In this document: piece by piece, positions 44,101 to 57,329 of the stretch | How the letters are laid out: each line of letters starts with the position of its first letter | Numbering within the stretch: position 1 is the first letter of the stretch | DNA from: Ascoidea asiatica JCM 7603 | Lineage: Eukaryota; Fungi; Ascomycota | DNA length: 64,000 nt | Assembly: GCA_001600695.1 (NCBI GenBank) | Contig: BCKQ01000003.1 | Location: 590,003-654,002, forward strand | Reading direction: 5' to 3' | Program-made: the position numbers and the translations under genes | Notes under the pieces: model-generated | The model's database searches: none | What the model saw: only the letters and a program-made list of their open reading frames with translations | Told to the model about the DNA's origin: nothing

Positions 44101-44171
44101 GCGCAAGTGGTTTAGTGGTAAAATTCGACGTTGCCATCGTCGGGCCCCCGGTTCAATTCCGGGCTTGCGCA
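44101..44171 (+). tRNA. tRNA-Gly (GCC), intronless
   Basis: GCGCAAG/CTTGCGC acceptor stem, TGGTTTAGTGG A-box, anticodon arm CGACG-TTGCCAT-CGTCG, GGTTCAATTCC B-box, followed by a T-run terminator. Confidence 0.97.
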
Positions 44172-48884: not shown

Positions 48885-49575
48885 TTAAGTTAAGATATTT
48901 TGATTATTATTTTCTTCATTATTTTCATATTCTTCATTTTCATTATTTTCATTATTTTCATTTTCTATATTTTCATCATTTAAATCCATATCTTCTTCAT
49001 CATCATCAATCATCATTTCAATTTCAGTTTCATGAAAATCAGAAAAATTAGATCTTCTTTGATCATTTAATGTAGAAACTCTTGCAATATTTGAATTAAA
49101 ATCAATAAATTGACTATTATTTAAATCATTTTCAAAACTTTCTTCAGATTCTATAGTATTGGTATTATTATTTGTATTATTATTATTATTTGTATTGGTA
49201 TTATTAGTATTATTAGTATTATTAGTATTATTAGTATTAATTGAAGGAAATCTTGATCTATAATTTTGATTTGAAGTATTGATTGAAGAAATTCTATTAG
49301 AAGAAATTCTACTAGATGGAAATCCATGATTTGAATTAGAAGTAATATTAGATCTTTCATCAACTTCATCATATTCTTCTTCATAAGCCATAAAATCCGA
49401 ATCATCATTATCATCAGTAACTTGATAATTATCTTGAAAATCAAATTGATAATTATCATTATCATGATTTACACCATAACTACTACCATGATAAAGTTCA
49501 TCAATTTCATCATCATTTAAACTATCATCATCATCATAATCATTATCATTATCATTATCATTATCATTATCATAA

Positions 49576-49616
<41 letters not shown>

Positions 49617-50234
49617 ATTATCATTATCAGGAATAGCAGCATCAAGATCAATATCATCCAGTCTTTCATTACCAACATTGGTTGTATTAGTAGTATTATT
49701 ATGATTATTACCAGTTATATCATTATTTGTTACAGTTCCTTCAGCTTGAATACCATCATGATCAGTTAAAATATTTTCAGCGGTACCCATTAAAGATTCA
49801 TTATATTCTTCATCCATTCTACTTTCAGATTGTTTTTCTTCTAATAAAGTTTTCATTGTTTTTCCAATACCTAAAGGTTTTAAATAATTATAACCTAAAG
49901 TTTTCATACAATTTAAATAAGAAATTTTAGATTGAATTTCTTGATCAAACATTGTTGAAGATGATGAAGAAGGTAAAGATAATGGATTTGAAGAAAGCAT
50001 TGCACCAACTTGAGCAGAAGAATATGATGATAAAGGTGGAGTAAATTGAGAATTTGATGGTAATAATGATTGTTGTTGTCTTGAACTATTACGATTATTA
50101 TGTTGAAATACTTCTAAACGATCATTAGCTTGATCTCTTGCTTTTCTTAAATAACCATAATGATTACTTGTTGAAGTATTATCATTAAGCCATAAATGAT
50201 GAGCATCTCTTGGAACTAAATCAGGAAGAAACAT
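48885..50234 (-). CDS. MND2: APC/C subunit Apc15/Mnd2-like
   Basis: ATG at 50234 (MFLPDLVPRDAHHLW); LGYNYLKPLGIGKTM; DIDLDAAIPD; long acidic tail. Confidence 0.75.
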
Positions 50235-50454
50235 TTTCAAATATATTAACTGTTTAATAATTACTTTGTACTTTGTACTTTATACTTTATATAATCAAAT
50301 AAATATAGAAATAAGCATTGATAATTCATATGAATATTTATATAAATTATATTTATTTCATTTTCTTTTATTGCTTTGAATAGAAAATAATTCTATTTTA
50401 TTTATTGTCTTTGATGTTTACTCTTCACCATTTTGGGGGGTTTAACAAGTATAT

Positions 50455-50633: not shown

Positions 50634-51113
50634 TTATGAAGATGCTTGAGGCGATAATAAAATTTTATCAACTTTAGAACTTTGAAGATGAATTGAAGGT
50701 ATTATCCATTTACCACAACTACATCTTGAACCTTTCCAACTATAACCACCAATTTTTGAATTACATTTAATATTTGGACAAATAAATTTACCTTCAATTT
50801 CACCTTTATTAATTAATTCATTTTTCATCCAATTTAAAGGTTCAATTAAAAAAAAATGAGAACAAGAATTTTGAGCAGGTGTTAAATTTACAATTCTTTT
50901 TGAATTTGGAGCAGTTTTAATAAATGATGATTGTTTTGAAGATTCATTTGGAATTTTATGAAAATTTAATTGATTTGATAATGCTAAAATTTGTCGACAT
51001 TTTTTACAACGTAATTTAAAATTTTCATTATTTGAGTTATTATTATCTAATTTATTTTCATTTAAAGCATTATTGAATTGATTTGATATATTATTATTTG
51101 ATATTTCTTCCAT
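50634..51113 (-). CDS. YVH1: Yvh1/DUSP12 zinc-binding domain only (no phosphatase domain)
   Basis: RCKKCRQILA...H...CSHFFLIEPLNWM...EGKFICP...CNSKIGGYSWKGSRCSCGKWIIPSIHLQSSKVD. In-frame TAA two codons upstream of the ATG. Confidence 0.8.
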   Translation of the reverse strand: MEEISNNNISNQFNNALNENKLDNNNSNNENFKLRCKKCRQILALSNQLNFHKIPNESSKQSSFIKTAPNSKRIVNLTPAQNSCSHFFLIEPLNWMKNELINKGEIEGKFICPNIKCNSKIGGYSWKGSRCSCGKWIIPSIHLQSSKVDKILLSPQASS

Positions 51114-51724: not shown

Positions 51725-52822
51725 TTAATCAACTTGTTTTTCAAAAGTTTCACCAGCAACTAAATCAGGAATATCAGCATCATCACCAGGAGATTCAATT
51801 ACATCAGAAGTTTTACCATTAGCAGCAGTTGCAGGATCTAAACCACCTTGTTTTTGAATATTTTCAGCTAATTGTCTTAAAATTTCTAAATTTTCAGAAC
51901 CTAATTGTGGTAAAATATTTGGTAATAAATCAGTTAATTGTTTTTCTTGTGGACGTCCATGAACTGCGAAAGTATTATTTTGAGTTGAAGCTTGAACTGA
52001 AGCACGATTAAAATGTAAAACATTACCATCTTCTTTAAAAAAATTAACTTCTTCAATACCATCTAAAGTTTGTGGAGATAATTTTTGTAAAGTTGTTTGT
52101 AATTTTGAATCATCTACATCATCTCTAAATACCTTCTTTGCTTTACGACGAGAACCACTAAATTAATAAATAAAAAATAAATAAAATTAGTTAGAATTTG
52201 TTAAAAATATATTTGTAATAAATATTTGTAATAAATATTTGTAATAATTTGTAATAATTTGAAATTGACTAGAATTGATTATACTTTGATTATAATTGAA
52301 ATTGAAATTGAATTGAAAATGGAATGTAATTAGATATCAAAGTTTTCATTATACTTATATTCCATTTAATTGGAATAATTGATTTGAATCTTTGTATGGA
52401 AATATCTGGATATAAATAATAAATTGAAATTAATTATGATGAGATTGATTAATATAGTATATTTTAGTCTATAATACTTTTTTATATTTCATAATTCCTA
52501 ATTATCTATACTTCTTTCAATGATCTTCAATAACATTTAATAATTTTTAATAATTTTTATAATTCTTAATAAATTTTTTGATAATTTTCAATAAATTCAA
52601 TAAATCTAGTATTGAATTAAATTCTTTCTTTCAATGAATTATAAATCTTTTTTTTATTTTTTAAAAGATGTTTAAACATACCCTATAAATAAAAGTAAAA
52701 TTAGTTAGTAAATTGAAATCTTTTTTTTTTCAATAAGAATATAATTATAATTATTAATACATACCAATTTTAGTAGTGCTTGCTTTCTTAAGTTTAGCTA
52801 ATTTTGCAGGATCGACAACCAT
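51725..52822 (-). CDS. EGD1: NAC beta subunit (BTF3); exons 52822-52765, 52682 (1 nt), 52157-51725; 163 aa
   Basis: Spliced product MVVDPAKLAKLKKASTTKIGGSRRKAKKVFRDDVDDSKLQTTLQKL...IEEVNFFKEDGNVLHF...NTFAVHG...LLPNILPQLG...DIPDLVAGETFEKQVD*; 58+1+433=492 nt. Absent from the ORF track. Confidence 0.93.
52158..52681 (-). other. EGD1 intron 2 (524 nt)
   Basis: GTATGT donor at 52681, TTCTAAC branch at 52196-52190, TAG acceptor ending at 52158. Confidence 0.9.
52683..52764 (-). other. EGD1 intron 1 (82 nt)
   Basis: GTATGT donor at 52764, TACTAAC at 52710-52704, TAG acceptor ending at 52683. Confidence 0.9.
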
Positions 52823-54083: not shown

Positions 54084-56183
54084 TTATATAGATAATTTTA
54101 ACCAATCCCATTCACTTCCAAGAGTCTCATTATTAGAATTATCAATACCTATTCCTGTTTCATTTGAATTATTTCCAATCATATCAAAATTAACATATTC
54201 ACTTCCATTTTCACTCATACTATTACTATTCATTCCAGGCTTATTTATAATCTTATTACTACTATTATTACCATTAATATTACTATTACCATTATTATTA
54301 TTATTCTTAAAATTATTACCATTACCATTCATTCCATTCATATTATTCATATTATTCATATTATTCATATTTGAACGATTCATATTTCCATAATATGAAT
54401 TATTCATCATATTATTCATACCACCATTATTATTATTCATCATTGAAGGAATATTAATTTGAGATTGAGATAATGATTGAGATTGAATACCAAACGTTTG
54501 ATTACGATAATTAATATTTCCATTAGATCCAAATTGTTGCATTCTTGGTCTATCATATGGTGAAAAATTATTTGGTAATGATGTTGATGGTCCACTTGTT
54601 GTCATTGGTGTATTAGGTAATGAATCATTATTAGAATAAATTGATCCTCCATTTTTCGGTATTCTAATTGATCCATCTATACTACTAAGTCTATTATTAT
54701 TTCTATTATTATTATTACTATTATTATTCATACTCATTGAATTCATATTTGGTCCCATATTCATATTCATATTCATGTTCATATTATTATTATTATTATT
54801 ATTACTATTATTATTACTATTATTATTCATATTTGGCCCTATATTCATATTCATATTCATATTTGTCATATTATTTATATTATTCATTGGACCTCCATGA
54901 AATGATCCTGATTGCATTGGATTATCAAACCCAATTGGAGAAAATGGAGTTGCAGGTGTATGTTGACTTGAAGAAATTGGTATACTTAATGGATTTGAAT
55001 AAATTGTTGAAGAATTTTTATTTGAATTTGAATTTGTTTTTAAATTTAATGGTCTAACAACTCCATGTAATTTAAAAAATAATCCACATGCATTACAAAG
55101 TAATTTACCTTCTGCAGTTTTTCTCCATAATGGTGTTGTTCTTGTTTGACAATTTGCACAACAAACATGTTTTGGAGAATCATCTGAAATTGATTTACTT
55201 ATAATATTTTTAGAATTTTGTTTATTTATTGTTGAAATTCCAAGTGATATACTTTTATTACTTTTTATTCTTGATTTATTATTATTATTATTATTGTTGT
55301 TATTGTTATTGTTATTGTTATTGTTATTGTTATTCTGGTTACTATTATTTTTTTTATTTGAACTTATAGATGTTGATAAACTTAAAGTTTCATCAGATTG
55401 ACTAACAGTTTCAATTTTTGATTTATTTGAATTTGAATTTGAATTATTTTCATTTGCAGTCATTTCTAAAGTAGTTATATAATCAGTTAAAGAAGATTTA
55501 ATATTTGGATCATCATCTAAAAAGAAATCTGACTTTTGTTTCTTCAAAGATAATTTATTATTATTTGAATTATTATTTGAATTATTAATATCCATCATAC
55601 CAAATTCTAAAAATGAAGTATCTATATTACTTTTATTATTATTAGATTTATTTTTATTATCATTAGTTTCATTTAATTTATTTTCATTTGAATCAGGAAA
55701 ATAAGATGATAAATCAAGAAAATTATCAAAATTATTATTATCATTATCCATATTAAAATCAAAATGAAATGGATCATTAATATTCAAATCATTTGAATTT
55801 GTATTATTATTATTATTATTATTATTGACATTATCATTTTTATTATTTATTGAAAGTTTTGATTTAGAAATTATTGAATTATTTGTTAAAGTAGAAGTTG
55901 ATAAATTAATACTATTATTACTATTATTATTATTTATACTATTACCATTAAAATTTTTAGAATTATTATTATTATTATTATTACTATTGTTAATATTAAT
56001 ATTTTTAGAAGGTTTTATTGAAAAAACAGAAGTTGCATTTGATGTTAAAGAAGTAGCTTCAGGAGAAGAATGAGAATTTGGATCAGCAGGACTTGTAGAA
56101 AAAGATAAATTACTATTTTTTCTAACTATATTTGAAATTGGAATATTATTTTTTATATTATTATTATTATTATTATTATTATG

Positions 56184-56219
<36 letters not shown>

Positions 56220-57329
56220 TTTAATATTATTTTGAATAATTGAAGAATTTGTTGATTTTTCTTCTTGAGATATTTTTTTAATATGAGCAACATAATCAAA
56301 ATCATCAATAATTGCATCATCATTGTTATTATTGTTATTATTGTTAATGTTATTCATATCCATATCTATATTTAAATTCATATCCATATTCATATCCAAA
56401 TTTAAATCCATATTCATATCTATATTATTCATATTCATATTCATATTCATATCTAATGGAATATCTAAAGGAACATCAATAGAATGCATATCTAAAGACA
56501 TATTATCTAAATGAGAATTTGAAATTGAATTTGAAGGTAAATTCATATCAATATCTAAATCTAAAATATTTGAATTTAAATCCATATCCATATTCATATA
56601 TTTATTCATATTCATATCTAAATCTCTATTAATATCCAGAATTGAGTTATTATTATTATTATTATTATTTGATTTATTAATATTTGAAGATATTGAATTT
56701 GATAATATAGATTGTTTTGATTTTTGTTGTTGTTGATTAAAGAAACTATTTCTTCTTGATATTGGTTTTAATATTTTTCTATTATTATTATTATTATTAT
56801 TATTAGTGGTTGTTGTTGTCTTTATACTTTTATTATGAAAGGGGTGAATGAATGAATTATTAATATTATTAAGTGAAGTTGTAGAAGAAGAAGGAGAATA
56901 AATTGATTTTGAATATTTTAAAGAATTAATTCTCCAAGCTAAATTTGTAACTCTTGTTGCATCAGGTAATTTATGTCTTGCACTTGAATACATTTTATAA
57001 ATTTCATAAGAACTTTCATCTTGTAAAACATCTTTAATATTGAAAGATATTTTCTTATTTGAAGATATATTTATTGGTAATATGTTATTGGTGTTGTTAT
57101 TGGTATTGTTGTTATTGTTATTGTTTGATTTTGATTTTGAATTTTTAGAATTTTTTATAGGTTTATTTGATTTTACATATTTTGATTTTGATTTATATTT
57201 TGATTTATTATTATTTATATTATTATTATTATTAGTTATATCATTTGATATTATTAATTTATCCTTTTTATTAATACTTTCAACATTTGATAAAGGAGAT
57301 TTTGTTTTAAATTTATCTTTATTTGACAT
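54084..57329 (-). CDS. AreA/Gat1-like GATA transcription factor
   Basis: N-terminal IYKMYS...RVTNLAWR (DUF1752-type), [11 protein letters not shown], single finger [14 protein letters not shown]...[18 protein letters not shown]-terminal EWDWLKLSI. Confidence 0.85.

Follow-up and report, generated by a model that had tools for sequence, protein, structure and literature searches.

A probable single-nucleotide coding exon in the NAC-beta gene EGD1 of Ascoidea asiatica, conserved between two introns in budding yeasts and filamentous ascomycetes

The gene EGD1, which encodes NAC-beta, a subunit of a chaperone that binds ribosomes, on the minus strand of a 64,000-nucleotide (nt) window of the ascomycete Ascoidea asiatica JCM 7603 (contig BCKQ01000003.1, positions 590,003 to 654,002; the window is the whole stretch of DNA that was analysed), appears to contain a coding exon of one nucleotide. 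We conclude, with a probability of roughly 0.78, that this is an ancient and constitutively included exon lying between two complete canonical U2 introns. A single base, G52682, stands between a canonical acceptor and a canonical donor, each belonging to a complete intron, and it is needed for both the reading frame and a conserved protein motif, the intronless gene of Pachysolen serving as a length marker. Local translation with the base included gave a product of 163 amino acids reading KIGGSRRK; skipping of the base shortened the product to 33 amino acids, and retention of either intron shortened it to 22. An earlier note on this DNA had given coordinates for the exons, introns, branch sites and single G, every one of which was exact (Table 1), and translation reproduced its prediction that direct joining of exon 1 to exon 3 runs into the TAG at 52116-52114.

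The NAC domain (PF01849, E = 4e-21) lies in exon 3, with best matches to beta subunits, and the closest protein to this exon was Egd1p of A. rubescens (75% over exon 3). The NAC-beta identity was further backed by an ortholog (P0135) that matches BTF3 structures. A paralog supplying NAC-beta function was ruled out, as only one copy of EGD1 is present in the genome (20.3 Mb). The glycine (Gly) codon that is split over the three exons lies two residues ahead of the RRK..KK ribosome-binding motif. Mutation of this RRK-(X)n-KK motif of beta-NAC abolishes NAC function in Saccharomyces cerevisiae (PMC4664479). Because the split codon adjoins an essential motif, skipping of the one-base exon therefore amounts to a null.

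We found that the pattern YAG-N-GTATGT occurred once in 128 kb (both strands of the window). When a preceding branch site was included, the pattern was detected three times in the 20.3 Mb genome, against once for a reversed-pattern control, and the other two genomic matches had no coding context. Across orthologs, the strict motif was present in 42 of 44 intron pairs, compared with 6 of 8800 shuffled introns. The AG-G-GT unit in EGD1 is not a product of chance.

Conservation of the unit extends well beyond Ascoidea. All 44 distinct ascomycete intron pairs that were scored (Ascoidea, Saccharomycopsis, Dipodascopsis and 38 filamentous-ascomycete-like loci; near-identical strains are included, so that the set represents about 30-37 lineages) had AG-G-GT between two complete introns, and the earlier expectation that it would be found in EGD1/BTF3 of related yeasts and filamentous fungi was far exceeded. 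The micro-exon base was G in every pair, and the third base of the Gly codon, supplied by exon 3, varied (T in 14, A in 14 and C in 16 pairs), as expected for a wobble position. Intron lengths ranged from 52 to 631 nt for intron 1 and from 49 to 524 nt for intron 2, with extremes of 52/49 nt (L003) and 631/141 nt (the genomic Saccharomycopsis locus L004). The branch site followed by YAG-G-GT and its donor was shared by A. rubescens, Saccharomycopsis crataegensis, two further Saccharomycopsis-like loci and the early-branching Dipodascopsis uninucleata, and the lichen fungus Xanthoria parietina also carries the unit. A metagenome scan yielded 80 loci, which were sorted by nearest named protein and by a quick protein tree (109 columns) used solely for the Ascomycota-like versus Basidiomycota-like grouping; all genomic filamentous-ascomycete-type loci with introns at the site carried the one-base exon.

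Other fungi showed different states at this site. Eleven basidiomycete loci (Kwoniella and ten Agaricomycete-like) had a single phase-1 intron, corresponding to intron 1 only, a chytrid locus had no intron at the split-codon site, and Pachysolen EGD1 is intronless and reads KVGGSRVK. Loss of both introns in many further yeasts is suggested by long Logan contigs on which a single open reading frame (ORF) was called at full length. Comparison of the ortholog introns revealed no conserved intronic sequence beyond splice signals and simple repeats. Rfam gave no match in the EGD1 introns, either in the window or at 10 other loci, and an explanation of EGD1 as a host of small nucleolar RNAs (snoRNAs) was rejected on this ground. 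Separately, a fungal clade from soil and peat metagenomes (L075, L077, L078, L080 and L081) lacked both introns at the site and kept a downstream intron; the quick tree placed it with neither the filamentous ascomycetes nor the basidiomycetes, and its identity would help to date the gain of intron 2. We also observed that a His/Asp/Glu repeat tract lies close to the C-terminus of Saccharomycopsis NAC-beta and is missing in Ascoidea (L002 3980-3991, L004 3200-3300 region), and that the public Terramyces NAC-beta model contains an unusually short intron of 20 nt at the downstream conserved position (L015 521-540).

Evidence for the joined form came from orthologous loci. The truncated call from L004 clusters with a 173-amino-acid protein that reads KVGGARRK. 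This protein comes from two Logan contigs, L096 and L097, which match L004 at 97-99% identity on either side, lack exactly its 631-nt and 141-nt introns and keep the G. Whether they represent RNA or a processed allele, these contigs would imply a G-G-T messenger RNA (mRNA) in the Saccharomycopsis ortholog, which supports the earlier claim of a one-base coding exon that completes a Gly codon assembled from three exons. The annotated gene of A. rubescens measures 1001 nt and its coding sequence 480 nt, the difference of 521 nt being equal to intron 1 plus intron 2; this model gives the right protein, and the 1-bp segment may already be annotated there. Among 20 transcript-like ascomycete contigs, 17 were joined fully in frame, none was skipped, two kept intron 1 only (L044 and L098) and one kept the 3' part of intron 2 (L021). 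L098 shares 99.2% identity with L099, a fully spliced contig, and in L021 the intron 2 remnant is still present after removal of the downstream intron. As consensus assemblies, these contigs hint at the order of splicing and cannot measure it.

These contigs also bear on a simpler model, in which a single intron runs from the +4 GT (GTATTA, 52760) to the TAG at 52158 and yields KIGIGSRRK, or in which a G is masked by an error of the assembly; in either case the internal motif would be incidental. The +4 route is in frame (164 amino acids) and is the sole canonical single-intron solution that keeps the RRK motif, and several public models use this donor (e.g., S. crataegensis, KVGIGARRK, span arithmetic 484 = 488 - 4). 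However, the +4 GT is absent in 14 of 44 orthologs and the spliced-form contigs read GG instead of the +4 form, which together largely refute the +4 intron, and the internal branch-AG-G-GT is kept in independent assemblies across two subphyla. We regard this model as extremely improbable. The earlier statement that only G+G+T works is thus right in that this joining gives KIGGSRRK and 163 amino acids, but it overlooked one other canonical in-frame route that exists on paper, through the weak +4 donor.

For the constitutively included exon, we propose that each intron, being equipped with a donor, a branch site and an acceptor, would be recognised across the intron (intron definition), so that no exon-sized landing pad would be needed. 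Intron definition is the mode reported for filamentous ascomycetes (PMC5587772). The two introns would be removed one after the other, and the acceptor AG of intron 1 would double as the "exonic" -3/-2 positions of donor 2 for U1/U5. Because of this double use, general spliceosome geometry makes simultaneous catalysis unlikely and sequential removal probable. Sequential removal had also been put forward in the earlier note and is reasonable, with the partly spliced contigs fitting it, but the accompanying label "recursive or twin-intron-like" was loose. A stwintron was rejected because the splice elements of both introns are intact in the pre-mRNA and neither intron interrupts the other (definition in PMC5587772), and zero-length recursive splicing was rejected because one G lies between AG and GT in 44/44 loci and is retained in the joined form.

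The two contigs that keep only intron 1 weakly indicate that intron 2 is often excised first, an order that would remove the downstream branch site and acceptor able to pair with donor 1 and would thereby guard against skipping. An obligate order in the opposite direction would be recursive-like, with intron 1 leaving first and regenerating the donor context TTGG-GTATGT, so that the internal site would serve as a ratchet point at which one base is retained. The AG-G-GT geometry resembles a ratchet site, and the persistence of intron 2 sequence in L021 fits such an order. However, donor 2 is already complete in the pre-mRNA, and L098 and L044 represent the opposite intermediate (intron 1 kept, intron 2 gone), which leaves an obligate intron-1-first order very unlikely.

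Several points weigh against a constitutively included exon as described here. The evidence for the joined form comes from orthologs and not from A. asiatica itself, whose product is predicted, and L096 and L097 could be an intronless allele and not RNA. Similarly, L098 and L044 could derive from genomes that have lost intron 2 and the downstream intron, and the retention of the 3' part of intron 2 in L021 means that the order of removal is not a fixed one. Because rare isoforms are lost in assembly, low-level or conditional skipping may escape detection. Sampling of Taphrinomycotina is uncertain, and the gain of intron 2 is therefore bracketed.

The exon might also be real and its skipping regulated. 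Donor 1 would then join acceptor 2 and the frameshifted mRNA would be lost by nonsense-mediated decay (NMD), tuning the level of NAC-beta, perhaps in coupling with ribosomal protein gene splicing; this would explain retention of the introns in intron-poor yeasts. In keeping with such a role, skipping leads to an early stop in 44/44 loci (8-108 codons past the junction, mostly 27-30), UPF1 is present in the A. asiatica genome, and the intron-poor Ascoideales have kept both introns, one of them commonly being long (381-631 nt), a feature also of highly expressed yeast genes. However, an early stop is the default outcome of any frameshift, 0/20 transcript-like contigs are skipped, the introns hold no conserved element and no known RNA, and many yeasts have lost both of them. 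We consider regulated skipping unlikely, and the NMD-coupled rheostat suggested in the earlier note received no positive support, given the generic nature of the early stop and the lack of skipped contigs. A related proposal, that the site has been a splicing checkpoint of Ascomycota for ~500 million years, at which ordered removal (intron 2 first) or its failure tunes NAC-beta through retention or skipping and NMD, is likewise doubtful; if true, it would place the exon among the oldest conserved one-nucleotide exons known, and give the first instance of such an exon regulating a core chaperone.

Returning to constitutive inclusion, the simplest history would be that intron 1 is common to Dikarya and that intron 2 was acquired one base 3' of it, at a G-G proto-splice site in the Gly codon, before the split between Saccharomycotina and Pezizomycotina. 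This split is ~500 million years old. Because the introns lie one base apart, loss mediated by complementary DNA would tend to take both, giving the both-or-neither pattern (44 pairs with both; Pachysolen with neither). No regulatory role would be needed for their persistence, since imprecise change destroys the ribosome-binding motif and the NAC domain of a highly expressed chaperone.

The one-base exon also explains the corrupted N-terminus beside the ribosome-binding motif in many public ascomycete NAC-beta models. Among 43 retrieved filamentous-ascomycete-type-core NAC-beta proteins, 39 do not read RIGGKGTPRR at the junction, as the earlier note had anticipated for gene predictors; this sample is biased, as aberrant models tend to become cluster representatives, and the figure demonstrates a common failure and not a rate. 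The public protein of X. parietina, for example, is mis-joined and reads RIGTPRR.

Table 1. Elements of the EGD1 locus of A. asiatica, in window positions
Feature	Position	Strand	Description
Coding exon 1	52765..52822	-	58 nt; 19 codons and first base of the Gly codon; ends AAA ATT G; agrees with ortholog N-termini
Intron 1	52683..52764	-	82 nt; phase 1; donor GTATGT; acceptor TAG; position common to Basidiomycota
Branch site of intron 1	52704..52710	-	TACTAAC
Single-nucleotide exon 2	52682..52682	-	G; putative second position of the Gly codon shared by the three exons
Intron 2	52158..52681	-	524 nt; phase 2; donor GTATGT; acceptor TAG; observed in Ascomycota alone
Branch site of intron 2	52190..52196	-	TTCTAAC
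Exon 3	51725..52157	-	Opens with the last base of the Gly codon and continues with GSRRKAKK; contains NAC domain PF01849 and the stop
RRK-A-KK stretch	52133..52150	-	RRKAKK matches the conserved beta-NAC ribosome-binding motif; one-residue spacer; 3' of the split codon
Premature TAG on skipping of the one-nucleotide exon	52114..52116	-	33-amino-acid product

Other features of the same genome were also recorded. The gene downstream of EGD1 (window 50634-51113, minus strand; L001 4726-5097) encodes only the C-terminal zinc-binding domain of Yvh1 (matching yeast Yvh1 residues 203-347, E = 5e-44), and neither a phosphatase domain nor a splice signal was found upstream of it. This short gene is the sole copy in the genome, and the protein of A. 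rubescens is equally short (124 amino acids); Yvh1 in Ascoidea seems to be phosphatase-less. Further along the window, we found an APC15-like ORF with long Asn/Asp tracts (48885-50240, minus strand; PF05841, E = 9e-9), a 1081-amino-acid Asn-rich GATA zinc-finger protein that is probably Gat1/AreA-like (54084-57329, minus strand) and a transfer RNA gene (44101-44171, plus strand; Rfam RF00005). Elsewhere in the genome, MPC1 (contig C3, 226300-227600, minus strand; L103) has, at the sequence level, a 2-nt exon (AG-AT-GTAAGC) between two introns with branch sites.

Coding exons of one nucleotide are already known; the EGD1 case appears to be new and is unusual for its breadth and age. A literature search that covered few subscription papers found no publication on a one-nucleotide exon in EGD1/BTF3/NAC, nor on a coding one in budding yeasts. 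The one-nucleotide exon of Fusarium CYP621A is called the first for a fungal gene in a 2026 paper (PMC12940212). It resembles that of EGD1 in its nuclear U2 introns, ascomycete host, AGGGT unit, G as the middle base of a Gly codon, necessity for the frame and widespread mis-annotation (PMC12940212). In contrast, CYP621A is rarely expressed and the exon is confined to ~20 Fusarium/Nectria orthologs (PMC12940212), whereas EGD1 is a housekeeping gene with the exon in Saccharomycotina and Pezizomycotina. The origin proposed for the CYP621A exon is cryptic-exon rescue (PMC12940212), whereas the outgroup state of EGD1 (one intron, Basidiomycota) points to the gain of a second intron. The one-nucleotide exons of plant APC11 and VPS55 are likewise coding, conserved in a large clade (land plants), subject to joint loss of both introns and absent from reference annotations, and inclusion in APC11 is constitutive (PMC4674806, PMC8831610). 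They differ in the genes concerned, in the base (A in APC11) and in their proof by mutagenesis and reverse transcription PCR (PMC4674806, PMC8831610), whereas the EGD1 exon is known from sequence.

Among fungi, Coprinopsis cinerea also has internal exons of one nucleotide, in 13 genes and with long-read support; this is a count in one basidiomycete (PMC12230235), and the basidiomycete NAC-beta loci read here are without the EGD1 exon. The snoRNA host polycistrons of Candida have budding-yeast U2 introns one base apart, indicating that the yeast spliceosome is capable of such splicing, but these hosts are non-coding, their introns carry snoRNAs and their processing involves nested or recursive steps (PMC5033589), whereas the EGD1 exon is coding. 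Stwintrons, including [D1,2]/[A2,3], share with EGD1 two consecutive U2 reactions at near-adjacent sites under intron definition, but in stwintrons an internal intron interrupts a splice element and no exonic base lies between (PMC5587772), whereas the EGD1 introns are intact and the G is kept.

Together, these findings suggest that a one-base coding exon is no lineage curiosity in fungi. It persists through a large part of a phylum, including budding yeasts with few introns, in a housekeeping gene whose mRNA is abundant, and is far more widespread than the Fusarium P450 case. EGD1 would also represent an uncomplicated example of a new intron arising a single base away from an older one. Moreover, tractable organisms such as Saccharomycopsis and, by inference, model moulds may offer it as a plentiful natural substrate for studying how two spliceosomes take turns at positions separated by one base and how they avoid skipping.
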